A stretch of 64,000 nt of DNA from Blastocystis sp. Blastoise (GCA_039096225.1 JBBPEB010000028.1:620001-684000), one strand, 5' to 3'. Shown: positions 37,663 through 64,000, counted from the stretch's first letter. Numbers and translations: made by a program. The notes: generated by a model not told the origin, from the sequence alone.

Positions 37663-38400
37663 TCTAAACAAAAATATCATCATCATACTAACTTACATAC
37701 ATTTATTTTCCAATATTTCAAGAAAAAATAGAATAACTATATATAATAACTATATATACAGTAAAGCACTTTGTTTTACTTTGAAAATAATCTTTATTTT
37801 TTGATTTTGTTAAATCATGGTTTTAAAAGATTCTTCTGCTCTTATTACAGAATCTCCGTGATTATTCTTTATTTCAGCATTATTTCGATTTATCTTTCGA
37901 TTGTTTATTTGAGTATTTTTATCATTTAAACATAAAATTATCATTTATAATTTGCATATATAATTCTAAGATCAGATAAGCAAGATATAAAAAGTGTTTT
38001 TATGGCAAAATGGTAGTTATTGAAAAGGATATTACGTTTTTTCTATGAATTATGTCGTTAATTAAGTTCTCTTGAAGTCTAATTTTTTTATTAAAATGGA
38101 AATAATCAGTTTTTTAATATTAAAAAGAGAATTTTTGAAAAAAAGAGTTTCTTAAAGGAGTTAAAATTCTTTAGATGAATATCTATATGAACTAAGAGTA
38201 TACAATATTTAAAGATATTAATCAAATGAGTAAAAATAAAAAAGAATAGTGATAAATATATAATTGTGAATAAATTTCATTTTAAACTATATAAAATATA
38301 AATAAAGAACATGTAGTATATTTTACACACATGCGTTTTCATAATAAACAAAACAATATATATGAAAATAATTATAATATATAATATATATATATAAAAA

Positions 38401-41400
38401 TTAAGTTATGATTTGTTCGTCTAAAGATTCTAATGTTGTTGATTGTGAGTTCACAGATGGCGTTACATCAACAATCATATCTGTTGATTGAAGAGTCTCT
38501 GAAGTATTATCTATTTCTAGTTGTGTGTTATTCATATTATTATTTATCATCGAATCATTTATTGTTAAATCTTTATTCATTGAAGATGTTATATTATTAT
38601 CTAAATTAGCAGTAGATTCTATATTATTATCGAAATTAACAGTAGATTCTATATGATTATCTAAACTAGCAGTAGATGTTATATTATTATCTAAATTAAC
38701 AGTAGATGTTATATTATTATCTAAATTCATTGTACCTCCTGTACTTATAGCTAAATAAGCTTGTTCATTCGCTTCATCAATTAATTGCTGTTTTTTAGCT
38801 TCTTCTCTATACATAAAGAAAGCTTCTTTATTTATTTGAATTGGTTCTACATTAATAGCTTCTAACGAAGATGGTGTTCTATCTTTTTCTCGAACTTCAT
38901 ATTCAGCTAATTCCATCGATTCTTTTTGTTCTTCTTCCCAAATTTCTTCTTCTTCTTCTAATCCTTGTAACTCCATCTGTAATGCTTCGGGAGTTACTTC
39001 AGGAATAGGATCATTAACTTCACGTAATTCTATACATTTCTGTTGAATAGAAGGCAATTTCTTTTCCAATCCTTTTAAATAATCAGCATTCTTACCAGCC
39101 CAAATTTTTAATTCTCCTTTTATTTTAGCTTGAACACGTTCAATACTTTGCTCCTCTAATAAATTACTTTTCTCTTTTTCTATTGAAGTTATTCCTGTAG
39201 TATTACTTGATATACTATTCGTATCTTTATCATTAACATCATTCGTATCTTCAATATCAGCATCATTCTGATCATTTATTGTCTTTGCCTCACGTGCTGC
39301 GTTAACAGCTGCTTGTGCGTCATCTTGATCTTCTATTTTATTAATTACATTCTCAAATTCATCATCAACTGGCTTTGATATTACTAAATATATATATATA
39401 TTGCTTATAGATAATGAAATAGTTTAAATATTATTTTTAAAAATAGTAATGAAAATTAATTATATATATATATATATACAATCATCAGAAGTAGGAGTTT
39501 TATTTACTGACGATAATTGATCCGCTATATAATAAGTCGAATAATAATAGTAATATTTAAATAAAACATAAATATTAATAATAATAATTATATTAAAACA
39601 AAAATAAATATTAATAATAATTATTATATTAAAACAAAAAAATAAATATTAATAATAATTATTATATTAAAATAAAAATAAATATTAATAATAATTATTA
39701 TATTAAAATAAAATATAAATAAATATGCTTTCAAAAAAACATAAATAACTATATACAATCATAATTATCTTCTGGAGGTGTTCCTAGTATATCATTAATA
39801 GTAAATTCTTTAAAGAAAGAAGTAGTAGTAAATTGACCTTCTTCTAAAGATAATTTATTTAAATATCGTTTTTGATTTGCTTTCTTTAATATATTTTCTT
39901 CAATAGTAGATTCACTTATCAATCGATATATATGAACATCACGTGTCTGACCTATACGATGAGCACGATCCTGAGCCTATATATATATATAAGATAGAGA
40001 ATATAGAGATGATATATAATATATACAAAAATATATAATATACAAAATAAATAATATATAAAACAAAAAAAAAATAATATAGAATAACTCTATAATAATA
40101 TATAATAACTATATAATAATAATAATATACTTGTGAGTCCATTGAAGGATTCCAGTCACTATCATAAAATATTACCGTATTTGCACCAATTAAATTAATA
40201 CCTAATCCCCCACTACGTGTACTTAATATAAATATAAAGATTCGATTATCCGTGTTAAATTGCTCCATCATACGCTGTCTTTCCTCAATTCCCGTGGAAC
40301 CATCCATTCGTAAATAAGTATAAGAATGATTATTTAAATATTTCTCAAGAATATCTAACATTTTACTCATTTGTGTAAAGATTAAACAACGGCTTCCATC
40401 CTTATGCAACTTTGGAAGCAAGGTATCTATATACATATATATAGATAGATTTATATATATATATAGAGAGAGAAAGAAAGAAAAAAAAATAATCAAAATA
40501 TTTATAAAATATAAAAATTATAAAATAATGATAATAATAATAATAAGCATCACATACTAAGCATTTGAAACTTTCCACAATCGAATTCTAAAAGATGTTT
40601 ATCTGGAAATGATATTGATTTTTTAATATTCCATTTATATATACATGAACTTCCAATAAAATCATGTAAATAATTTTGTAATGGTTTTTTGTCTCTTTCT
40701 TTCTTCTCTTCTTCTTCTATAAATATTTCTTCTTGTCTCTCCATTACATTTTGTAAATGTTTTAATTCCATTTCTGACTTCTTCTCTGATTGACTAATAG
40801 AACTTAGTATATGAACTCCATTTACTATATGATTCATTGAATCTAAATATTCATATTCTTCTTGATCTTTGAGTTCTTTATATATATCCTCAAAATTACT
40901 TATTTTATATAGAGTATTACAACTTATTTGAGGTCCAAATTGACTATATACTTTTAATATATAACAACTACATATATTAATATAACTCATAAATGTTTCT
41001 TCTTGCATAGAATAAGAAGGACATAAATAATGTAAATATTGGCAATCTTGTTCCCAAAGGCTTAACTCTTTATGAGTATTCTTATAATTATATGTAGTTT
41101 TATCAATCCAATAAGAAGGACGATGATATATTTGTAGTAAAGATCTTAATTCACGACCATAAACAGGTTGTCGGTCACATTTCCGACGGTTATTATTATA
41201 ATACTTTGTATATCGTTCTTGAATACCATCAAATTGTTTCATATTTCGATGGGCATCTGCTTGAGCAAAGAAACGATGAACTACGGGAGATATATAATCA
41301 ACATTTAAGAGGGTACCCATAGTATCTTCATAATTATATAAATCATAAACTTCTTGTATCTTCTTTCTACATTCTTTTTGATATAATTCTTTAGAAGGAC

Positions 41401-43969
41401 ATAAAGAAGAAAGAAGGGAAGCCTATATATAGATATATAGTTAATATACTTAAAAAATATTATTTTATATTGAAATATATTTGAAGAAAAATATTTATAT
41501 ATATAATATATATATATATAAAACATATATATATAATACTTAAATATAATATATATATATATAACATATATATATATAATACATAAATATATATATATAT
41601 CTTCATATACTTCTAAATGTGTAAATTGTTCTCTTTCAATAAGATTGCCTTCAAATAAAAATAAACTAATTCCTCGTGTTTGAATAGGAAACACAACAAG
41701 TTGTTTTGTCCAATCATTCTTCTCTAATTCTTCATCTGTTAAATCATTTGCAAATCGATTATAACGTATGCTCGTCACATTATGAAGAACACAATCTTTA
41801 AATAGATTTGGAATATGTATAAGTATAGGTGTACTAGCAAAAGGTGTGTCAATAGGTCTAGTTTCAAATAAATCAGGGTGATTACATACTTTACGTAATT
41901 GCATTAATACACTCATCATACTAAATAATGAACCACTTGATAACATATCTTTTGTAGAACGACGAGATATATAATCCTCATATAAATATTTTTGACGTTT
42001 TGATAAAGGACAATATAAAACATGAAAATATTTTTTAGGCATCTATAATAGATATAGATATAGAATAAAAAGAGTAAATTCAATACTTTAATACATAATT
42101 ATATAGAAAAATATAGAGTTATATAAAAATAAAAAAATAAATAAATTTATATATAATTTAAAAAATATATATATAAATAAATAAAAATAACATATTATAT
42201 ATACTTCTTTTTCGACTTCATTTTTTAATCTTCTTAATATAAAAGGCCTTAAAACAGTATGTAATCGAAGAATCAATTGATTATTCACTTTAATATCTCC
42301 TTCAACCATAGTATTTAAAGGATTTGAAAACCAAAAGGCGAATTCCCCGCGGGAACGGAATAAAGCAGGCATTAAGAAATGCATAAGTGACCATAATTCC
42401 ATTAAACTATTTTGTAAGGGTGTTCCAGTTAATAAAAGACGACGCTTGGTATTAAAATGAAGTAATGTCTGCCAACGTGTACTTTTAAAATTCTTTATAT
42501 TATGTGCTTCATCTAATATCATATATACCCATCTTCTTCTTCGAAATAAAGCCACATCTTTTATAGCTAATTGATACGAAGTAATACATATATGATAGGA
42601 ATTCGGATTCGTCCATCCCTTACGCTTCTCCTATAGAAAGCATAGTATATAAATGGGTATCATTATTCACTATTATTAATTAATTGTAATTATGAATATT
42701 AATGGTAATTATTAATATTAATTATATTAAGAATTATATTAAGAATTATAAATAATAAATAATAATATAATAATAAATAATAATAAATAATAAATAATAA
42801 CATAATAAATAATAATAAATAATAATACAAACATATATATACATACTTTACGTTCATTTAAATTACCATAATAAGTCATAATTTTAAATGCAGGACAAAA
42901 CCGTTTAAATTCACATTCCCAGTTTAATATTGTACTCGTAGGAACGATAATAAGATGTGGACCCCAAATACCTTTATTTCCCGCCAAATAAGCAAGGAGG
43001 GAAATAGTTTCAATTGTTTTTCCTAATCCCATTTCATCTGCTAATATACCGCTAATACCTTGTTCATATAAAGAGATTAACCAATCTAAGCCTTTTAATT
43101 GATAAGGACGTAATATTGTCTTTGGATTAAATAAATAAGGAGTCTCACTTATATGACCTTAAAGAAACAAGCATAAGATTTATTTTAAAATATTTATTAA
43201 AACTCAAATATATACATATACATACATTTATATATATATTAAAAATAATAATAATAAAAACATCATTTATTCAAGTTAATTTTATATAATATATACTATC
43301 TTCTAATTTAGGCAGTTGACTAGAGATTCTGGTTGTATAATCTTCAGTTTGTTTCAGCATGAATTGTAAATGTCGATCCATTAATTCAGCTCGACGTTCA
43401 TATAATTGACTATAAATAGCAGGATAATAATATATACATAAAGTATAGAATATACTATAAACAAATATATATATATATACCTTTTATGTTTGTATGTAAC
43501 AATCTTATCAATTTTATCCCAATAAAGTTTTATATGTTTTGTAATAAACTTTGCTTTCTGCTTCTTTTCTTTGATAATTTCCTATGAGCATTATAGAATA
43601 TCTGTTTTTAAATGATAAATGATCAGATACTTGTTCCTTTTTGAGTTCTGCTTGATCCTTTTCTTTTCTCCATGCTTGAACACATTTACATATTTTCTTG
43701 GTTTTCTGATTCTTATATTTTCGTTCATCATCGAAATCAGCAGATAACCATTTCATCTCTGCAAGTAAATAATCCCAATGAACTTTTTCTGGTGTTCGTG
43801 GAGGTGGATCTTTACATTTAGGAAGTCTACTTCCTACACTCGTACACGATCGACGAAGTTCAAGATCATTTTTATCTTCTAACAATAAATGACGTTTGAT
43901 GGATACAGTACCATAATCTTCTAATGTCTGTGAAAATGGTTCTGTATTCTCATCCTCATAAACATCCAT
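38401..43969 (-). CDS. SWR1: SWR1/SRCAP/PIE1 chromatin-remodelling ATPase
   Basis: HSA domain ([23 protein letters not shown]), [37 protein letters not shown], a long insertion, [19 protein letters not shown] and [14 protein letters not shown]. Confidence 0.95.
38581..38730 (-). repeat. Coding 30-bp (10-aa) tandem repeat x5 in the SWR1 C-terminus
   Basis: [50 protein letters not shown]. Confidence 0.85.
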
Positions 43970-44651
43970 TCTCTATATATAAATATCTATTTTATGTAGT
44001 ATTATTCTATCAAAAAAAAAATTGTATTTTTAAGAAATAATTTTTTGAAAAAATGATTTTCCGTGTTTATTAAGAAATCATTTGGTATTTCGTTTGAATT
44101 CCCCTAGAAACACGAAATGATTCATTTAGAATTCGTATTCATAATTTGGGTTTTCTTTATTGTTTTGTTGTTATTCTGGTTTGATTATGTTTTATAATTA
44201 TTAAAATAATATTCGTATTAATATCAATGTGATTTGAATTATAGTTGTAAATTAAATATGATAAAAGAATAACTAATTTGTGTACACAGTAAGATTTATT
44301 AAGCTGATTCTAGAATTAATGATTCATATTACTCAGATATACATTAAAGATATTAGGCTATTAATCTGAGGAATAGAATATTCTTATAGTTATTGTTTTT
44401 TATTTATATTCTGATATAAGGAGTATTAAAGTATTTGATCATATTTATATATACGTGCATGAGATGATAAGAATATATTATTCAAAGAAATATATAGATA
44501 AAGCATTGAGAACAAGATTAACGATGATTTCATGTAGATACTTATTAATTGTTTATTATTATTTATTCAATAACTATGATATATGATGCAAATAATGGTT
44601 TTCAATTTTTATATTGTATATATTTACACTATGGACATTTTTTCAGGTTTC

Positions 44652-44860
44652 TGTCAAAAGGTCCAACGACTTTTTTGTTTTGGTTTCCCCAGTGGTGAGC
44701 AGTGAAAATTTTTAAATATGTAGCTGACAAAAGGTTATTTGATTTTTCTGTTTGGTTTCCCCAGTGGTGGAGCAGTGAAAAAATTTTAAAGGGTAGCTGA
44801 CAAAAGGTCCAACGACTTTTTTGCTTTGGTTTCCCCAGTGGTGAGCAGTGAAATTTTTTG
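44652..44860. repeat. Three tandem 73-bp subterminal repeats
   Basis: Units start at 44652, 44725 and 44798, with core TGWCAAAAGG...TTTGGTTTCCCCAGTGGTG(G)AGCAGTGAAA. Confidence 0.92.
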
Positions 44861-45147
44861 TCAGAGTTTCAGTGATTTTATAAAATCGAAAAGCAGTGCA
44901 AAAGTATGACGCACCTTAAAACAATAATTGGCGAATAAAAATGGTTTTAAATATTCTCTATTTTTTCATTTATTGGTTTTTTTATTCTTTTTGTGGTGTA
45001 ATAATAAACGATATAACAAAACAAACAAATTAAATATTATCAAATAATCATAAAAACAAATAATAGAAAACAATAATAATAAATATATAAAAAAAAGATA
45101 ATAAAACATATAATAAATAATATAATAAAATATATATAATATTTAAT

Positions 45148-45818
45148 TTATAATATTTCAACCAGGACAGTTTCAGTCTTTAATTTGCATTTAAGCCTAA
45201 GCAACCTATATAAAGAGATGATATTAATTAACTAGTACTATTAGTAATATATATAACATTTTAAAATAATAATAAAATAAAAATATATACCTTTTATTGA
45301 AGCCATTACTAGAAAAAGCAAGGACCAAAGGCAAGGAACCATCCTATAAAAGATATATTAAATAGTATAAGTAATAAAAAGGAATATAATTAATATATAT
45401 ACATACCTTTGATAAGCCATTCTCTCCAATTAACAACAACGACAGCAACGGAACCCCCGGAAACCTATATAAAGATAGAGTAAGTTATATAATATAATAA
45501 TATATAATAAAGTAAATTAATATAGAATAATAAAATATAAATATATACATTACTGCTATATAAATATAAAGTGGGGTTAGTTATATAATATGTAATAGAT
45601 AATATAGATGATATATACCTTCTTTTAACATTGATTCCTTCCATTCTAGACCTAAAGAACCCATCTATAAGAGAGCCACGACCACACAAAAGAAGGACCA
45701 GAACGTTTAAGGAGACCAGCAAGTGTCAAAACACCAAGCAGAGACAGCTACAATAGAAAAATGAATGAATAGAGTAGAAAAAATAAAATATAAAGAAACA
45801 GCAAACACCTACCATCAT
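45148..45818 (-). other. Five-exon spliced cargo unit (small ORFs, pseudogene or ncRNA)
   Basis: GC-richer blocks 45747-45619, 45464-45407, 45343-45291 and 45205-45148 are each bounded by host-style TATAG|...|GTAT sites. One frame stays open across three junctions. Confidence 0.55.
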
Positions 45819-47658
45819 AATAGTATCATATATAATAAAATAAAAATAAAATTTAATAATATATCATATTAATCATATAAGATATAATAAAATAAATATG
45901 TGATAAGTCATGTAGCATTTTGTTTTGTTATAAAAGGGTGTAATAGGAATTTAGAAGATATAGCTGAAATAATGAAAATAAACATGAATAATCTCATATC
46001 TACTAAATATAGAGAATCTTCATCATAAGAAAAATGAATGGTTAAGAATAAAAGAGAAAGAAAAATTTTATTTCTATGAGGAAAATGGATATTGTTATTG
46101 TTATTTTCAATTTATCATAATTATCATAAGTAATACAAAAATTGTTTTATTTTAAAGAATTATATAGTTATTTATCATTATATCATTTTATAATCAGTTT
46201 TGACTATGGAAGAGTGATTTTTATCCTTAATTGTCAAAATTATTTTTAGTATCACTCAGTAAGTATAAGTCTTTTAAAAAATAAATATAGGTTACAATAC
46301 AGACTTATAGAGAAGACTCTGAAACTTCTATTTCCAGAATAAAAGTCATTTATATAATCCAGAATGATTGCCTGAATCATTATTTAAAGAATCAGTTTTA
46401 TCACATATCTTCAATAAAATTATAAAATAAAGAAAATGAAGATAAAAAGGTCTAGAGTCGAAAAATGTTATGAAATATTATCTTTTTAATGTATTTGTCC
46501 CGATTTTTTATTAATCTGTTATCATAATATGACAAAGAGAGTGGTAAAAACATTTTAAAAGTGAATTAAAGCAATAATTGGAATCAAGTTAAAGTCTTCT
46601 AATACCTTTAAATAGACTTGAAATACATAGAGTAAGCATTTTTTCATGCAAATAGTGTTTTTCATTTAAATAATATCAAAAACAAATCAAAATAGTATTT
46701 TATAATTACTCAGCAAGAACTTTTTCTAGTATTCAAGGACTTACTATTATCAAATATACGTATAAACAAACAAAAATCATATTTTATATATTTTTAGTTG
46801 AATAGTCGGAGTCGTGTTGATAGTTTATTATAAAACAAATGCAAAAATCACTTTTTTGTCAAAAAAAGTCTTATATCGATATATAGTTTTATTCATAATT
46901 TATTTATTGTCTACAAACTCTGTGTATTCATTTTAAGTGATTTTTAGTAAAACTAAAATTATTTGAAATACATATTCTAATTTCGAAAATGACAAAAACA
47001 TATTATATTACATATTTAGTGTTTAAATGAAGTTTAAAAGTTATTAAAATATCAATTAGTTAAAAAATATAAAATATTGAGAATCTCCATTTTTATGACT
47101 TGTCTTAAATCACGTTAAAGGTGTATAATTGAATAGTTGCATTGATTATTTGTATGATTCTAGTAATATTTTCTAAGAATTTTGTTTTTTAACAAGAATA
47201 AATTCTTAATTTATTGTTTATCAACTTAAAAATGTATTTAAATGATTATTTTCTTGTGTAAAAGGGTATAGTGGTTATATGAAAAAAAAATTACGCAGAA
47301 TCATTTGATAATATAATTTTGAAAAATGAGAATTATTATTTTGAACTAAACTAATTTTTCACATATACTCATTATAAAACGACTTGAATAATCTTTTGAG
47401 AAGATTATTTTGTTTTATAATACACTTAAGAAGTAATTGAATGTTATTGTGTCTCTTTTTGTTAAAAAGATTATTTTGAATGCTATTTTTGATTGATCTA
47501 TATATTATCAATGCATTCAATGATGAAATAAATACATATGTAAAGAAAAAATAGTAATTGATCTAATTTATCTTCATCTATTTGAATAGATAATTTTTGA
47601 AAAAATTAATATAATATAATTATTGATACCTATATATAAAGAATTAGTTATGTAATTG

Positions 47659-47727
47659 ACCTTAAGACAGGAATTGAACCTGTTTTCTATCATAAACTGA
47701 TAGATACTTACCAATATAAGCTTAAGG
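47659..47727 (-). ncRNA. Non-canonical tRNA-like cloverleaf
   Basis: CCTTAAG-CTTA TATTGG TAAG-TA-TCTATCA GTTTA TGATAGA-AA-ACAGG TTCAATT CCTGT-CTTAAGG-T. It has four perfect stems and a B-box GGTTCAATTCC, but lacks the U8/A9 linker and a normal anticodon loop. Confidence 0.7.
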
Positions 47728-47739
47728 ATAATATAGAAT

Positions 47740-49470
47740 AAAAATACATAAATGAAAGTAAAATAGTAGGAATAATGAGTCAGTATGATGTGTAAGGATA
47801 TATTTATATATGTATAAGTGAAAAAGGATGCTAGAAGAAGGGAAAAGAAGTAAAAAAGAATAAAAGAGAAAGAAATATAAAGTAAATGAGATAGGGTCTT
47901 TAATTATTGAGATTAATAAAAAAAATGAAAAATAATTTATAATAAATGACAAAGATAGATATATAGAGATCTATAATAATAAGGAATGCAGAAGAGAAGA
48001 GGATTAGAGGATAAAGAATAAGAAGAAGATAAGGAAGATAAGGAAGAAGATAAGGAAGATAAGGAAGAATAAGAAGAAGATAAGGAAGAAGATAAGGAAG
48101 ATAAGGAAGAATAAGAAGAAGATAAGGAAGAATAAGAAGAAGAAAAGAAGAATAGGAAGAAGATAAGGAAGAGAAGGAAGAAGAAGAAAAGAAGAATAGG
48201 AAGAAGATAAGGAAGAAGAAGAAGAAAAAGAAGAAGAAAAAGAAGATAAGGAAGAATAAGAAGAATAAGAAGATAAGGAAGATAAGGAAGAAGAAGAAGA
48301 AGATAAGGAAGAAGAAAAAAAGAAGAATAGGAAGAAGAAAAAGAAAAGAAGAATAGGAAGAAGATAAGGAAGAAGAAGAAGAATAGGAAGAAGAATAAGA
48401 AGAAAAGGAAGATAAGGAAGAATAAGAAGAAGATAAGGAAGAAGAAGAAAAGAAGAATAGGAAGAAGATAAGGAAGAAGAAGAAGAATAGGAAGAAGAAT
48501 AAGAAGATAAGGAAGATAAGGAAGAATAAGAAGAAGGAAATGAATAATGACAACAAGAAGATGAAGAATAAATAGAATAATGATAAGAAAGAATAAATAG
48601 ATTAATAAGAGAACAAGAGGATGAATGTGAAGAAGAGACAAGGAAGGAGGTGAAAAAAAAGAAAGAAAAGTAAGATAAAGAATAGGAAGAAGATATACAA
48701 GAAAATGAAGAAGAAGAGAAAGAAAAGAAAAGAAGAATAAACAAGAAACATATATAGAGAAACAGAAAGATATAAAGAAATAAAAGAGATAGATAGATAG
48801 ATAGATAGATAGAGAGAAAAAAAATACAAAGATATAAATAGATAGATACACTAATAGATGAATAGAAAGAAAGAAGAAAAGAGAGACATAAAGAAGAAAT
48901 TAGATAGAAAGAGATAGAATTCTATATAGAATGAGAGATATACAAAAGAAATCAAATGAAATAGAGAATAAGATAAAAATAGATACAAGAATAAAGATAA
49001 AAAGAGAAATAGAGGAGTAGGGAAGGTGTATAAAAAAGAAAGAATATAAAGATAGGTAGAGAGGAATTGAGAAGGATAGAGAAGGAGGAGGAAAACAGAT
49101 AGAATTGGAAGACGAAGAAAAGAAGATGAGACGAAGAAGGGAGAAAAAAGGAGCAGGAAGTGAATATCAAGAAAGATAAATTTATATAGAAAAAAATTAG
49201 AAAGAAAAATACATACAAAGAAAACGATAGGGAATGATAGAGAGAATTATAATTTGAATGACATAGAGAGAAGGAGAGACAAAGCAAGATAAAGAAGTAT
49301 AATAGAAAAAACAAAGAAGAAAAAAAGAAGAATAAAAAAAGAAAAGATAGAACAATAGTATATGAGAGAAGAAAGAGACAGAAAGAAAACGGGAAATAGG
49401 GTAGAGACATAGAAGGTAATAAAATATATAGAAGGGGAGAGGGGATTGAGATAAATAAATAGATAGATAT

Positions 49471-49539
<69 letters not shown>

Positions 49540-51585
49540 GATAGAAGAATACCGAAAGATATAGAGAAGGAGATAAATATTAATAAAAAGGAAAATATGG
49601 ATAGAGAGGAGATAGAATCAAACAGAGAAGGAGAAGTAGATAAAAGTCGATTGAGGGAAGAGAGAAGTAGATTAAAATAAAAACAAATAGCAAGAGTTAA
49701 AAGGAAGAAGGGAAGAATATAGAATGATTTGAAGAATGAGATGTATATAGAAGTGAATAGAAGGAAATAGAGAAGGAGAAGTAGATAGAAAAGATTAAAA
49801 ATAGAAGGAGATAGAAAGATAAGAGAATGATATAGATACAATAGAATGAGATAGAGAAGATAAAGTAGATAGAAATGGATAGAAATAAGAAAAATAAATA
49901 GGATAAGAGAGAAAGAGAGATAAAAGGATATAAAAGGATATAGAAGGAGAGAAAACGGATTGAGATGTAGTAAGATGGAAGGATGTAGATGGAAATAGAG
50001 AAGTAGATAGAAGATGATGGAGAATAAAGAGGAGATAGAAGAGGAGATAGAAGGAGAAAAAGAAGAAGAGGAAGTAAATTAAGTTAGAAGGAGATATAAT
50101 AAGATAGAGAAGTAGATATACGTAGATATAAGGAAATATACGAAGATATAAGTAGATAAGAGAAAATAGAAGGAAATAGAGAATGAGATTGAGACACATA
50201 AATGAGGTAGAATGAGATAGATAAGGATAGAGAAATATGAAGAGAAATATAGGAATACAGAGAGATAGAATGATGTTGAAAGAGAAAGAAAAGGAAAGAC
50301 TGAAGATTGAGACAGAAGGAGTAGCTGAGATAAAAGGAAGATAGAGAAGGAAATTGAAAGATGAAGGAAGAAGGAGAGAAGATGAAAGAAGAAGAATATA
50401 GAAGAAGATAGAGAATGAGATAATAGGGATAGAAAGAGAAAAATAGGAAAAAAAGATGGTTAGAAGAAAATAGAAAAGGAGAAAGAAGGAGAGATAGAAG
50501 GAGAAATAGAAGGATATAAAAGAGATTAAGAAAGAAGTTAGAGACAAGAAGATATAGATATATAGAAAGAAATAAAAGGATTAAATAGAAGATTAATAGG
50601 AAATAAATAGGAGACATATAGAAGATTAAGATAGAAGAAAAGAGACAAAATAGAAGTAGATATAACAATATAGAGAATGAAAGGATAGAAATAAAAATAG
50701 AAAATAGATAACTAGAACATAAGAATATATAATAATAGAGAGAAGGAGAGAGAGAAGAAAAAGTAGATATAAAGTGGAAAAGGAGACATAGAAGGAAATA
50801 TAAAAGGAAACAAGAAGGTAGAAAGAGACATATAAGATAAAATAGACAGGGACAGAGAGAAATAAATGGAAAAAGAATAAGGATAAAGATGGATACGAGA
50901 ATAGAGAGGGAGAGAAGGAAGATTGAGATAGAATTATACAGAAAGAGGAGAGAAGGAAGATAAAGAAGGAAAATAGGGCAGTAAAAAAAAGGGAATCAGA
51001 AGGAGGAGAGAAGAAGTATGAGAAGAATAGAAAGAAGGAAGAGGAGGAAGGCAAATAATAGAAGAGAACTATATATATAATAAATAGTGATATAAATATA
51101 AATAAGAAGATGAAGATCTGAAAAAAGCAAAGAATTATATGGAGAAGAAGAAGAAGAAGAAGAGGAAGAGGAAGAAAAGGAGGGTATACACTAATACATG
51201 TCGAGGAAAAAGAAGTATAGAATAAGGAGAAGAGGATAACAGGATAAAAGAAAAAGACATAACGAAATACAATGTAAATAGAATAGTGATTAAGAAAGAG
51301 TAATGAAAGAGTGATATAAAAGGGAAGCGAAGATAAGAGAGAGGTATAATTAAAAAAAAAGAAAAATAAAGGAATTTAGATAGAAGAAAAAATAAAAGAA
51401 AAATGAAGATCTGAGGAAGATAATGAATCAAAGGGAGAGACAAGGATATAGGCTGGAGACAAGGCATAGGAAGAAGTAATAAAGAAAGAAGATGAAGAAA
51501 TAAGGAGATAAAAGTGTAGAAGGAAGAAAATGAAGAAGAGAGAAGAAGGAATCATTTTGTGTAAGAAGAAGAAATAAAGAAGAAC
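47740..51585. repeat. ~3.9-kb purine-rich (+)/pyrimidine-rich (-) low-complexity tract, with a GAAGAAGATAAG-type minisatellite (48007-48540) and (AGAT)n runs
   Basis: Almost entirely A/G with very few C on the + strand. This explains the many overlapping F/L/S/Y-rich minus-strand ORFs. Confidence 0.9.
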
Positions 51586-52100
51586 TAGATAATAAATAAA
51601 TAAATAAATAAATAAATAAACATACCTAATAGAAAAAAATAATTTGGTGATGTTGAGTCATAGGGAAAGATAACCAACAGAAACAGTAGAAAACAACCTA
51701 AATAAATAAATAATAATAAATAAAAATATAAAAATAATGAAAATAAATAATAAAATGAATTAGATTCTAATTTAAGAAAAAAACAAAAAGAAAGCTAATA
51801 ATAGATAGAATGAATATACGATAAGTACTCTATTATATAATACTTAAAAATATAACAAAGAAAAAAATTAGAGATAATTATAAAAATAAATAAATACATA
51901 TATACTTTGAAAGTAGTTTGACATCATAGACGTTGTTGACATGGACTGAAGAGGACTCTTATAACCATGGACGAGCAGGAACCTATACATGCTAGAGAAT
52001 GGGAGAATGTTAATATTGATAAAGAATAAAAAATAGTAATATACATACAAGAGAATAATCTGAAGTTAAAATCAACTTCTATTTTTTAAAATAACAGCTA
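51584..52100 (-). other. 5' exons of a putative spliced transcript entering the pyrimidine tract
   Basis: Donor GTATGT at 52048, exon ~51982-51906, exon 51697-51626 and acceptor at 51585. The introns have host-like composition and no convincing protein is encoded. Confidence 0.45.
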
Positions 52101-53653
52101 ATAAAAATAAAATAAAAATAAAGAAAATAAGTAACAAATGAAAATATTTTCTAAGTTAATAGGCTCAATAGCGTATGGGTGTATTCAGGTCTTAAAAGAA
52201 AAATCATTTTTGCGGGAATATCAAGAAACTCAAAAAAAGTATTTTTTCCCTCCTTTTTTCACTGTCACTTTTCTTTAATATTTTTGACTTTTTAGTATTA
52301 AAAACGATTCTTACAGGCATGTATAGAGACTCTATACCACTTTTGAGACTAAAAATCAAATATTTAAAAATGAGTGAAAATCTTGACTAGCAAGAAAAAC
52401 AATTATGTGAAGCTGAGTATGTTGTGTATACACATATCTAACAACAGAGATGATAAAAACACACAACTCCTCTTGGTTTAGGACATAATTATGAATTCTC
52501 TCAAAAAAGCTATTTTAAACCTTAAAACGATACCCTGAACTATAAATCAAGTCCTGAATGATATTCTAAAGTCATATTTTTAAAAACAGGTTTAATGACG
52601 ATAATCAATAAACAAAAACAAGAGCTTCCGTTTTACTTTTCTTTTTTGAATTTTTAATTGTTTTGACTTTCTAGGGTAGTTGGCTGAAAGAAATGTTGTC
52701 GTCTTTAGGCTAAAAAATGATGAATAAAAAAGTCAAGTCATTTTATTGTTTTTTCCTTGGGAAATAAAAAAGAAGAAATTTTTAGGTGTGTTTTGGTTTA
52801 GGCTGTATAATGGTTTTTATTGTAAAAGGACTTGACGAGAATGATTGAAATGATAATACATCACTCAGAGAACACACAACTTTAAAAAATTTGTCACTCA
52901 TGTAATCCATTCCTGGAATTATAGACTTCAGAGAAAAAATTAAAGTCTTTTTGGTTTTAAACAGTCATTTTAAATCATAAAACACTGTAAAATAGTCAAT
53001 ATTTAGAATGTCTATGATTATATAAATAAACAATATATTTTGTAGAGTTATTTTTAAGTTTTTCTCGTCAAAAAGAGAGAAACTTGACAAGTTGGCGGAC
53101 ACTCTTTTCTCGAGTTTAGGCCAACGTATTTTTGATTAAAAAATCCCAGTCATTTTGTTGTTTCTCTTACGGGAAATAGGGTCAAAAAAACACAAAATGT
53201 CCATAGTGTATAATTTTTGAATTCCATCGTTGGAATATTAAATATTAAATATGTATCGACTTTTCTATATATATATTTATGAGTTATTTTTAAAAATTAG
53301 TTTTTTATTGTATAAGTCTGGATTAATAAAAACTAACCTATTTATGTTTATTAATTATAAGGAATATCATTAGCATTTTAGTTTTTTATTTATTCTAAAA
53401 TGATTTATTTATATATATATATCGTTTTCGTTGAAAATTAAAATTTCTTTGTATTCAATTCAATTTCCTTCTCATACTCTTTAATACAAATACTTCTTTT
53501 TTATTCTCTTATTAGTTTATTTTATAAATAAAATCAATATCAATATATAAATATTTCTACAATAATAGAAACAAACCAATTGATGACATACATATATCTA
53601 AACACATAAAACAAGAGAAACAACAATAAATTCTTTGTAAAATGACCTTATTA

Positions 53654-54382
53654 TTAATCTTCTGAAACCCATTTATCATCTTGCATTCCTTTTTTAGCTT
53701 TCTAAACATTAATGTATTTTTAATATATGAAAGATATAATATATATAATAAATAAATAAATAAATAAATAACAAATAAATAATAAATAATAATAAATAAA
53801 TAAAAAATAAAATCAAAAAAAAAAATATCACTATAAATACTCCATAACCCCAAATAGGTTTCCATTCTTTTGTTTGTTCATCGAATTCCATACGATTATG
53901 TTTTCTTTGTTTAATACCTTTTTCACGAGCGAATTTATCCCATTTGGTTTCTTTAATAACAGGAATAGGTTTCTCTCTTGGTATTTGAGAAGTACATTCA
54001 GGAAGATTAGCAACTGGGCCAACTTCAGTGACTTCAGTAGGTAATTGGAATAATTTATTGAATAATAATTGAATATTATCTCTGCTAACACTTTGAAGAT
54101 ATTCTTCCTTATTTTTCTTCAATTCCTATACTTACAGAAATATGAATTTCATAAAATTAAAACTGTTTCAAGAAGAAATTGTGTGTAAAAATATATACTT
54201 CTGTATTTAATGCATGTGTATCGAAAGCAGCAAGATTTCCAAGATCATAATTAAGATCATTTTCCTTTCCTTCTTGATCTACAGTAGCACTTTTGAAAAC
54301 TAATGTATACAAAGAATAATATAAATACATATTTATATATACCAGAATTAGGAACTCTCTTTACTTGTAATATAGTAGACAT
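53654..54382 (-). CDS. RRS1: Ribosome biogenesis regulatory protein Rrs1 (short form)
   Basis: Motifs YDLGNLAAFD, SRDNIQLLFNKLFQLP, IPREKPIP, TKWDKFAREKGI and EWKPIWGYG|KAKK. Four exons. Confidence 0.93.
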
Positions 54383-62826: not shown

Positions 62827-64000
62827 ATGAATCTTCATATGTTGTCTATAGCCCAGGATATTCGCAAAAATAGCGTTATACTTCGCCAAATTATTGAAAT
62901 AGCAGTATAAATAATAAGCTTTTATATTTCCATATCATATATTATTCATTTTAACCATTATATACATATATCGTATTTATAAAATAAGGTATTATATAGT
63001 AAATACTCTAGCAATTGTTTTTTTGTAATATTATAATTTATAATATACTACTATTACATAATAAATATATAACTTTATATAAATATCCATAATTAAATTA
63101 CTATTATATATTTCAGAGCAAATAAAAATGAATTGTAATCAATATATTTATTTAGATTAGCTTCTAATATAAATAATAATTATATTTATATATTATTGCT
63201 TTTTATTTATAAACTGTGCTATTTTTACTTCTTATATGCATTATTTAAATATTACTATATATATAGAATAAAGCAACGATTTATGGATCAAAATCAATTA
63301 AAGATGAATTAGAAGATGAAGCCTATAAGCTGTGGGTAACGCTGGAACTTCCATATGAAAAATTCCATGATATTTTAGTTTATACAAATTCAACGTTCAA
63401 ATTGGTAGATAGTAGTTATAGTACACTTCTGAATAGCAATTATGACTCACAAACATACATCAGAAGCATTAGATCTAAACAATTCTTCTTTCCAGCTTCA
63501 TTGAGACTTTATATATGTCCTGAATGTTTAAAAATTACAAATGCTACATCTTCTAGAAACAGCCTATCTTACGACGATATTAAATGTTTCGAGCATAACG
63601 ATATTTCAGATGATAGTATATATATATAATGATATTTAAGTATCTTAATAAATACTTAATAAAATTGTACTATTCACTATATTCTATAGAAATGTATCAT
63701 ACAACAATACTTCCTGTTATCCCACGAATAAAAAGACTTCTTTCTAATGCTGATCTTCTAGAAGATATATCGTTTTACAAGAAGGACGATATAATGCAAC
63801 TGCTAAGTCTTCATAGTCATGAAGACTATTATATTCAAACATCAGAGATGGATACTCGTGACATAACACAAAATACATTAGTTGATATCCCTTATTTCTT
63901 TTATGGTTCTACATTTTATAAATATACGCAACCTCTTGTAGAAAAAGGCGATATTTTCCTCTTTTTTTCTGTGACTTCTGATGGGATAACTGTATTTAAT
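62827..64000 (+). CDS. CACTA/EnSpm (Tnp2/Transposase_21)-like transposase, 5' part, runs off the window
   Basis: Exons ~62827-62904 (tentative), 63267-63616 and 63690-end. In order: YICPEC, ILPVIPRIKRLLSN (cf. TnpD YFPxIPRLxRLF), and LFFSVTSDGITVFN (cf. LxLxTDGxxPF, the first catalytic Asp). Confidence 0.72.

Follow-up and report, generated by a model that had tools for sequence, protein, structure and literature searches.

What is the 8.6 kb of DNA at positions 44627–53208 of a 64,000-nt window of the genome of Blastocystis sp. 'Blastoise' (contig 5: 620001–684000; 'the window' below means this whole stretch), and is its interior of any use to what carries it? The host, a gut-dwelling stramenopile protist, here from a tortoise, has a genome of 33.3 Mb in 34 contigs and ~23% GC. 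An earlier, sequence-only reading had taken the stretch for a mobile, non-autonomous element of CACTA type, without a transposase of its own, holding a co-oriented cargo that may be a functional non-coding module, and had proposed as mobiliser an enzyme like that encoded at 62.8–64 kb of the window. The answer reached here is that it is very probably a full-length copy of a non-autonomous transposon of the CACTA/En-Spm type (CMC superfamily), and the same confidence extends to the overall account developed below, in which the mobiliser is another one and the different parts of the cargo fare very differently.

The ends are the natural place to begin. The 15-bp terminal repeat CACTATGGACATTTT is present exactly twice in the window, once at either border of the element and on opposite strands; with up to two mismatches permitted, two matches were reached in 2 of 100 shuffles. 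It begins with CACTATGG, the inverted repeat is perfect over exactly 15 bp and then ends, and TA stands immediately outside each element end, all as the sequence-only reading had it. That reading was also right about the 73-bp subterminal repeats, of which there are three in tandem, at the left end only, with the core TTTGGTTTCCCCAGTGGTG; they are a probable binding region for the transposase or for an accessory protein. The CACTA termini, the subterminal repeats and the 2–3-bp target duplications described next together fit the CACTA/CMC superfamily.

That the element has moved can be read from its copies, which were compared over ~1.8 kb at each end and at a few 3.8-kb loci. Its terminal 274 bp (left) and 309 bp (right) are each found, at 99–100% identity, at 30 places in the genome, and when left ends are paired with right ones 26 elements result, with ends 8415–8836 bp apart. 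There are, then, ~30 near-identical copies with identical ends, and some groups of them are identical across 1.8 kb at each end. Perfect 3-bp target duplications flank 19 of the 26 paired copies and 2-bp duplications the other seven, the TA of the window copy included, and the duplicated sequences vary (GTT, ATG, GAT, TCC, TGA, TTA and others). One copy, at contig 13: 909068–917646, is nested within the terminal repeat of its neighbour, CAC-TAT / copy / TAT-GGACA, and works like an 'empty site' test inside a single genome. The element has been mobile repeatedly and recently, by cut-and-paste with target cuts staggered by 2–3 bp.

The nested copy belongs to a head-to-tail arrangement of two full copies (contig 13: 909068–926219), the first of which sits in the left repeat of the second just after its CAC; the outer copy has a GAT/GAT duplication and the inner one a duplication of TAT.

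Might the TA on both flanks of the window copy betray instead a Tc1/mariner-type or other TA-targeting element, or might the whole be a segmental duplication or an assembly artefact? The flanks would suit the former, yet either possibility is scarcely credible in the face of 3-bp (19) or 2-bp (7) duplications of many sequences, of identical boundaries at every site, and of a partner enzyme, considered below, of the CACTA family. Because most copies carry 3-bp duplications of varied sequence, TA is not a target of the Tc1/mariner sort; it is a plain 2-bp duplication and reflects no preference for TA.

The element encodes no transposase. The ten longest open frames outside the long tract in its interior (56–86 aa), searched one by one against Pfam, gave no domain match, the sole trace being YncO at a chance-level E = 0.019, and tblastn of the partner transposases against the element found no similarity and no protein-level remnant. 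A candidate source lies elsewhere in the genome. Matches to Transposase_21 occur at four places, and the candidate for an autonomous relative is a single 15.5-kb element (contig 23: 362896–378401) which has the same terminal repeat and the 73-bp subterminal repeats, whose left (362896) and right (378401) ends are 94% and 90% identical to those of the window element, and whose flanks, CAT-CACTATGG...CCATAGTG-CAT, show a 3-bp duplication. It carries an intact protein of 917 aa, P0001 (at NCBI, a hypothetical protein of Blastocystis sp. Blastoise), so divergent that it had 21 matches among 1.84 billion representative proteins; Pfam scores for Transposase_21 in the contig 23 partner are 27.7 to 30.8 bits, around the cut-off. 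In hhalign a profile of P0001 with 10 homologues matched a bona fide Transposase_21+DUF4218 protein (which itself reaches 301 bits against Transposase_21 and 145 against DUF4218) with 97.7% probability and an E-value of 2.5e-12 over 449 columns, and this alignment takes in invariant D263, D353, a CxxC, an LD.MH block and E695. On these sequence criteria P0001 is to be classed as a DDE transposase of the Tnp2/Transposase_21 + DUF4218 lineage, that of the CACTA family. Within its element the gene reads from the right end leftwards, as the cargo blocks of the window element do.

What the two elements have in common is confined to ~380 bp at the left (96%) and ~165 bp at the right (92%) and goes no further, in a comparison that took in the first 1.4 kb of the partner (to roughly contig 23: 364334) and the stretch from its transposase gene (roughly 373535) onward; a probe from the tract (window 49550–51100) and a model of the cloverleaf to be described had no match in the contig 23 partner. 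Since the likeness is limited to the ends, the interior is cargo and not the remnant of a deletion. A deletion derivative of the autonomous element, as with dSpm, was considered and rejected: the interior is not colinear, only the ~380 + ~165 bp are held in common, and of the protein there is no remnant. By way of these shared ends P0001 would be able to mobilise the 8.6-kb element in trans.

The mobiliser favoured by the sequence-only reading does not hold up so well. At window 63265–64000 (+) there is indeed the start of a CACTA-type transposase gene, running off the end of the window, and showing a CxxC...CxxH block as well as a '...FSVTSDGITVFN' block that corresponds to the motif of the first catalytic D in the alignment of homologues. 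It represents a third, distant lineage: its identity to the N-terminal part of P0002, a second CACTA transposase (1143 aa, 53% identical to P0001), is 26% over 96 aa. No CACTAYGGACA terminus was found elsewhere in the window, and none near that gene; as a distant relative with no matching terminus, the window-end transposase was rejected as the mobilising partner, with P0001 of contig 23 the better candidate. The gene for P0002 exists in three near-identical copies (contig 5: 500192, contig 19: 220920 and contig 23: 205345).

Whence, then, the interior? A second CACTA family, family B (the family of the window element being family A), offers a clue. Its terminus is CACTACGGACAG (e.g. contig 25: 718792, and contig 7), and its subterminal repeats, of ~95 bp, retain the core TTTGGTTTCCCCAGTGGTG. 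In a part of the left subterminal region the ends of the two families agree at only ~76%, and the terminal repeats differ. Family B nonetheless shares the cargo, at 91–95% identity from window 44825 to the limit of the compared loci (47401), and the tract and the tRNA-like fold likewise match at family-B places. In both families the order is the same: a five-exon unit, a 1.8-kb AT-rich spacer, a cloverleaf, a purine tract and the 5′ blocks. The cargo therefore appears, from this distribution, to be a separate and older cassette that rides in a second CACTA family also. Weaker pieces of the cassette are present on contigs 28 and 16.

The sharing has gone further than mere co-residence. The window copy is one of a 4-copy subfamily (contig 5, contig 15: 262972, and two on contig 13) defined by a patch of family-B sequence in a family-A backbone. 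At 44825–45205 this subfamily differs from family A at no position, and at 45206–45747 (I4 to E2) from family B at none of ~540 bp, while immediately to the left of the patch family B and the window copy differ at 55/320 and 11/56 positions. Other copies join haplotype blocks in other combinations. The window copy is evidently of a recombinant subfamily and the copies are, judged by these blocks, mosaics. Gap repair after excision, with a related copy as template, would yield just such a mosaic pattern, and segments were probably exchanged between copies in that way.

Of the cargo itself, the cloverleaf is the part that repays closest attention. The sequence-only reading had pointed to a tRNA-like cloverleaf, and the 68-nt fold has a folding energy of -20.6 kcal/mol (z = -4.5). 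It is not a tRNA gene. ARAGORN gives no tRNA at its default and calls Lys(TTT) at a relaxed setting only, the Rfam tRNA model has no match to it up to E = 10, the 8/9 linker bases after the acceptor stem are missing, and the anticodon loop is not conserved, its letters differing among three cloverleaf contexts. Searched with a covariance model of the single sequence, the genome yields no fewer than 150 matches over the full 68 nt, ~38 of them in families A and B and the others in repeated loci with grouped scores. Comparison of the three contexts shows both partners replaced in 8 of the 24 pairs and a single partner replaced in none; pairing holds in 94% of the alignment cells, no measure was reached by any of 500 shuffles, and slid controls paired at 35–43%. 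Because these changes in the stems are compensatory, the cloverleaf is under selection as an RNA fold, and it is the only part of the cargo with direct evidence of selection. Series of matches with identical scores lie at contig 4: 1506834–1542674 (some ~3.1 kb apart) and, many of them, at contig 6: 1651–112281, which suggests other repeat families or arrays with the same module.

Need the unit act as RNA at all? Its B-box-like T arm, GGTTCAATTCC, might serve at the level of DNA or of RNA polymerase III (Pol III) by recruiting TFIIIC/Pol III, for a short RNA or a chromatin boundary. T arm and loop do not vary among the three contexts, diverged as these are, TGG is retained in the D loop, and runs of T follow the fold within 13–55 nt in the window copy and in one other. 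However, the compensatory changes involve all four stems, as befits an RNA fold and not just two promoter boxes, the match to an A box is poor, and chance alone makes T runs frequent in this genome; we regard the proposal as quite improbable.

Adjoining the cloverleaf, in the spacer, is a snoR21-like C/D match (window 47513–47589, +; 19 bits, E = 5.7, chance level) with an ATGATGA box and a terminal stem. Rfam detected no snoRNA.

On the other side of the cloverleaf lies the 3.8-kb tract, the ~4-kb pyrimidine tract of the sequence-only reading. On the + strand it is 56.5% A, 26.3% G, 14.7% T and 2.4% C, i.e. pyrimidine-rich and G-poor in the direction of the cargo, and it contains a degenerate minisatellite of ~500 bp (48014–48535) and a (GATA)n run (49449–49539). 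The long minus-strand frames within it are a by-product, because of the depletion of G. Beyond it are the 5′ blocks, with an acceptor opening the tract; here the intron varies more than the exon-like parts that it separates. The exon-like blocks and introns, at both sides of the tract, were called from splice motifs only, and at that level the ordered, minus-strand blocks that had been noted earlier stand; the blocks are richer in GC than their surroundings.

Spliced leader, long pyrimidine-rich exon, tRNA mimic: does this amount to a non-coding gene of the MALAT1/mascRNA sort, its 3.8-kb U/C-rich exon ended by an RNase P cut at the fold and the five-exon unit constituting a second transcript? 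In its favour, GT..AG blocks, tract and cloverleaf follow one another in a fitting order and share one orientation, the fold is under structural selection with no conservation of the anticodon, the architecture is retained in families A and B, and in the two other contexts also the sequence upstream of the fold is G-poor. Against this, the ~70 nt that precede the fold show no evident A-rich or U-rich element of triple-helix type, the G-poor sequence upstream elsewhere is largely (TA)n, which is common at 23% GC, and the tract, although 95–100% identical in 32 copies, is 73% identical in family B, compared with 99% for the fold (93–100% within family A). Such a gene is rather unlikely.

The five-exon unit presents a different puzzle. 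Its joined exon-like blocks, when translated, have an open frame across E2–E5 only in the 4-copy haplotype of the window copy, the common haplotypes having stops, and the length of E3 shifts by one base either way among haplotypes. Starting at the ATGATG stub, a frame of 33–35 aa stays open among the haplotypes examined, with about one third of its residues differing. A coding unit was rejected, given stops in all haplotypes but the one, and the unit is probably non-coding. Yet it is the exon bodies that diverge, 4–5 times more than the introns, between haplotypes: 53/235 exon versus 24/365 intron positions in one comparison (p = 2e-8) and 34/235 versus 11/370 in another (p = 3e-7). Between one copy and family B, 15 of the 53 positions of E4 differ and none of the 366 in the four introns (p = 7e-7). 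Plain decay from GC to AT is not the cause, as in an initial comparison the excess is seen at A/T sites (16% versus 5%) and at G/C sites (31% versus 18%) alike, and exon GC stays at 36–47%, with the splice junctions retained. Nor does hosting snoRNAs in conserved introns provide a way out: there are no Rfam matches and there is no fold signal in introns or exons. Three candidates are left for the divergence of the exons, namely a constraint on being spliced and not on content, micro-conversion from diverged copies, and exchange via spliced RNA templates. The last of these would explain both the 4–5-fold divergence of exon bodies and a further peculiarity, a 39–40-nt GT..AG block inside E2 (window 45660–45661) that some copies have and others cleanly lack, on two haplotype backgrounds. 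Since TATAG borders this block on both sides, slippage is an alternative origin of its presence and absence.

A sceptic would see in all this inert cargo: a captured gene fragment in decay, a low-complexity tract that has expanded, and a hitch-hiking, tRNA-derived repeat of the SINE (short interspersed element) kind. In favour of this, no reading frame is conserved among haplotypes, no domain and no annotated protein matches, exon bodies vary freely, the cloverleaf is at no fewer than 150 sites, many of them outside the family of the element, and low-complexity DNA is enriched in the genomes of tortoise isolates (PMC12129017). The compensatory changes speak the other way, for selection on the fold, as do junctions and introns that are kept, with exon GC at its steady level, while exon bodies change, and an ordered architecture common to two families with differing ends. 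Neither is a host parent gene to be seen among the matches listed: in the exon-module search, which scored 40 of 198 candidates, all 44 of these fall in transposon copies. On balance inertness of the whole is unlikely. The earlier suggestion of a functional non-coding cargo is strengthened for the tRNA-like fold, by its compensatory changes and its occurrence in further families of repeats; as for the tract and the exon units, what stands is conserved architecture only.

The picture that emerges for the transposon is of P0001 recognising the shared left and right ends and moving the 8.6-kb element in trans, of an interior that is an older cassette common to two CACTA families with different termini, and of copies that exchange segments by recombination, probably in the repair of gaps after excision. 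Several points weigh against it and deserve to be kept together: no subterminal repeats were found at the right end; P0001 scores 27.7 bits for Transposase_21, just under the curated cut-off of 28.6; its action on the element is argued from the shared termini and from nothing else; the covariation test compared three sequences (the window copy and two other loci); and the longest frame of the tract (304 aa) has no protein match in a collection of 5.8 billion sequences. With regard to the cargo, the likeliest reading, plausible though short of probable, is that it is transcribed from the minus strand, in the direction of the partner's transposase gene, the cloverleaf being an RNA-processing or a Pol III/TFIIIC-type signal that serves the element, together with non-coding exon-like units. 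Decidedly unlikely is the fuller proposal of a non-coding expression cassette in which a G-less pyrimidine RNA would be ended by a tRNA mimic, in convergence with MALAT1/mascRNA, with exon-limited exchange by way of spliced RNA templates.

The features are collected in the table. SNF2/SWR1-like and RRS1 genes are the neighbours: the element is upstream of the ATG (43969) of the former, at ~660 bp from it, and beyond the 3′ end of the latter, at ~450 bp. Both lie on the minus strand; the element has thus inserted between genes and runs in their orientation. A poly(A)-site motif, TGTTTGTT, occurs 9 times in the window versus 2.7 expected, with two occurrences on the minus strand of the element; as a poly(A) signal it was dropped, not being enriched at the gene ends of tortoise isolates (PMC12129017).

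Table. Coordinates, in window positions, of the 8.6-kb element, its parts and the adjacent genes
Feature	Position	Strand	Remarks
SNF2/SWR1-like helicase gene	38400–43969	-	HSA-like and DEAH/helicase motifs; many short AT-rich introns
Left target-site duplication, TA, 2 bp	44625–44626	.	2-bp class, 7 of 26 paired copies; 3-bp class, 19 of 26
Left terminal inverted repeat, CACTATGGACATTTT	44627–44641	+	Identical in at least 28 copies
Left cis region common to autonomous element	44627–45005	+	~96% identity; likeness stops at 45005
Subterminal tandem repeats, 3 x 73 bp, core TTTGGTTTCCCCAGTGGTG	44637–44859	+	96% identity in the 15.5-kb autonomous element
Five-exon-like unit	45148–45818	-	Junctions all GT..AG, motif-based; no conserved reading frame
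E5	from 45205	-	GT..AG bounded
E4	45343–45291	-	GT..AG bounded
E3	45464–45407	-	GT..AG bounded
E2	45747–45619	-	GT..AG bounded
E1 stub, ATGATG	45818–45813	-	GT..AG bounded
Recombination patch	45206–45812	.	Family-B sequence in family-A backbone; defines the 4-copy subfamily
AT-rich spacer	45831–47659	.	No coding or Rfam signal; 91–95% identical in family B up to 47401
tRNA-like cloverleaf, 68 nt, linker-less	47660–47727	-	T arm and loop GGTTCAATTCC invariant; not a functional tRNA
3.8-kb tract	47760–51585	.	Purine-rich on +; G-poor and pyrimidine-rich on -
5′ exon-like blocks	51626–52049	-	Donor 52048; blocks 51991–51906 and 51697–51626; acceptor 51586–51585 opening the tract
Right cis region common to autonomous element	53044–53208	+	~92% identity
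Right terminal inverted repeat	53194–53208	-	Perfect match to left repeat
Right target-site duplication, TA, 2 bp	53209–53210	.	TA outside right end
RRS1 gene (P0003)	53650–54122	-	PF04939

How much of this is new? The tortoise isolates of Blastocystis have genomes of 21–23% GC with long introns, and in the published genome paper transposons are treated only as a percentage of the genome (PMC12129017). No paper joining 'Blastocystis' with 'CACTA' or 'EnSpm' was among the 10 best-ranked full-text matches. The element represents a new CACTA family, non-autonomous, recently active and with an identifiable partner, in a stramenopile gut protist; as a kind of element it is ordinary. The cargo is a new variant: conserved, apparently non-coding, with a selected tRNA mimic that is common to repeat families, and with introns kept while exon bodies are free to change. 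Some 30 copies with identical ends and one intact partner are candidates for a natural transposition system in a protist without genetic tools. A tRNA mimic common to several repeat families suggests that transposons make use of the tRNA-processing or Pol III machinery of the host, and conserved introns with free exon bodies are a concrete and testable oddity.

Comparison with systems already known puts the several parts in perspective. With En/Spm and the dSpm/I elements of maize there are in common the CACTA termini, the 3-bp duplication, the subterminal repeats, a Tnp2-type DDE transposase in the autonomous member and the mobilisation of defective members in trans, for which in the present case the termini argue. 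Unlike them, the window element has an interior unrelated to the autonomous element and not derived from it by deletion, subterminal repeats at one end only, and 2-bp duplications at a quarter of its insertions, and it belongs with an extremely divergent transposase in a stramenopile gut protist. As regards cargo, comparable are the CACTA elements that carry gene fragments (Pack-CACTA type), such as Tgm-Express1 of soybean and Tpn1 of Ipomoea, likewise non-autonomous and with intron-bearing cargo, predicted in our case, that is co-oriented with the element; here, in contrast, there is no host parent gene among the matches listed and no conserved frame, and the cargo, common to two families, has a structured RNA module among its parts.

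For that module the vertebrate MALAT1 and MEN-beta RNAs come to mind, where the tRNA-like mascRNA and menRNA are involved in 3′-end processing. A linker-poor, non-decoding cloverleaf directly after a long, apparently non-coding unit is the likeness. There is no relation in sequence, the Blastocystis fold is on a DNA transposon (~38 copies) and in other repeats (at least 150 matches in all), no upstream triple-helix element is evident at it, and it is known from sequence alone. tRNA-derived SINEs, and the tDNA/TFIIIC boundary elements, are dispersed tRNA-like units too, with a conserved B-box-like T arm as here; the Blastocystis unit differs in its position in the middle of a transposon, its four covarying stems, its length of exactly 68 nt and its want of linkers. 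Finally, in snoRNA host genes of the UHG/GAS5 type introns are more conserved than exons, and the five-exon unit, probably non-coding and multi-exon-like, with introns more conserved than its exon bodies, resembles them in that respect; it differs in that Rfam detected no snoRNA and the introns show no fold signal.

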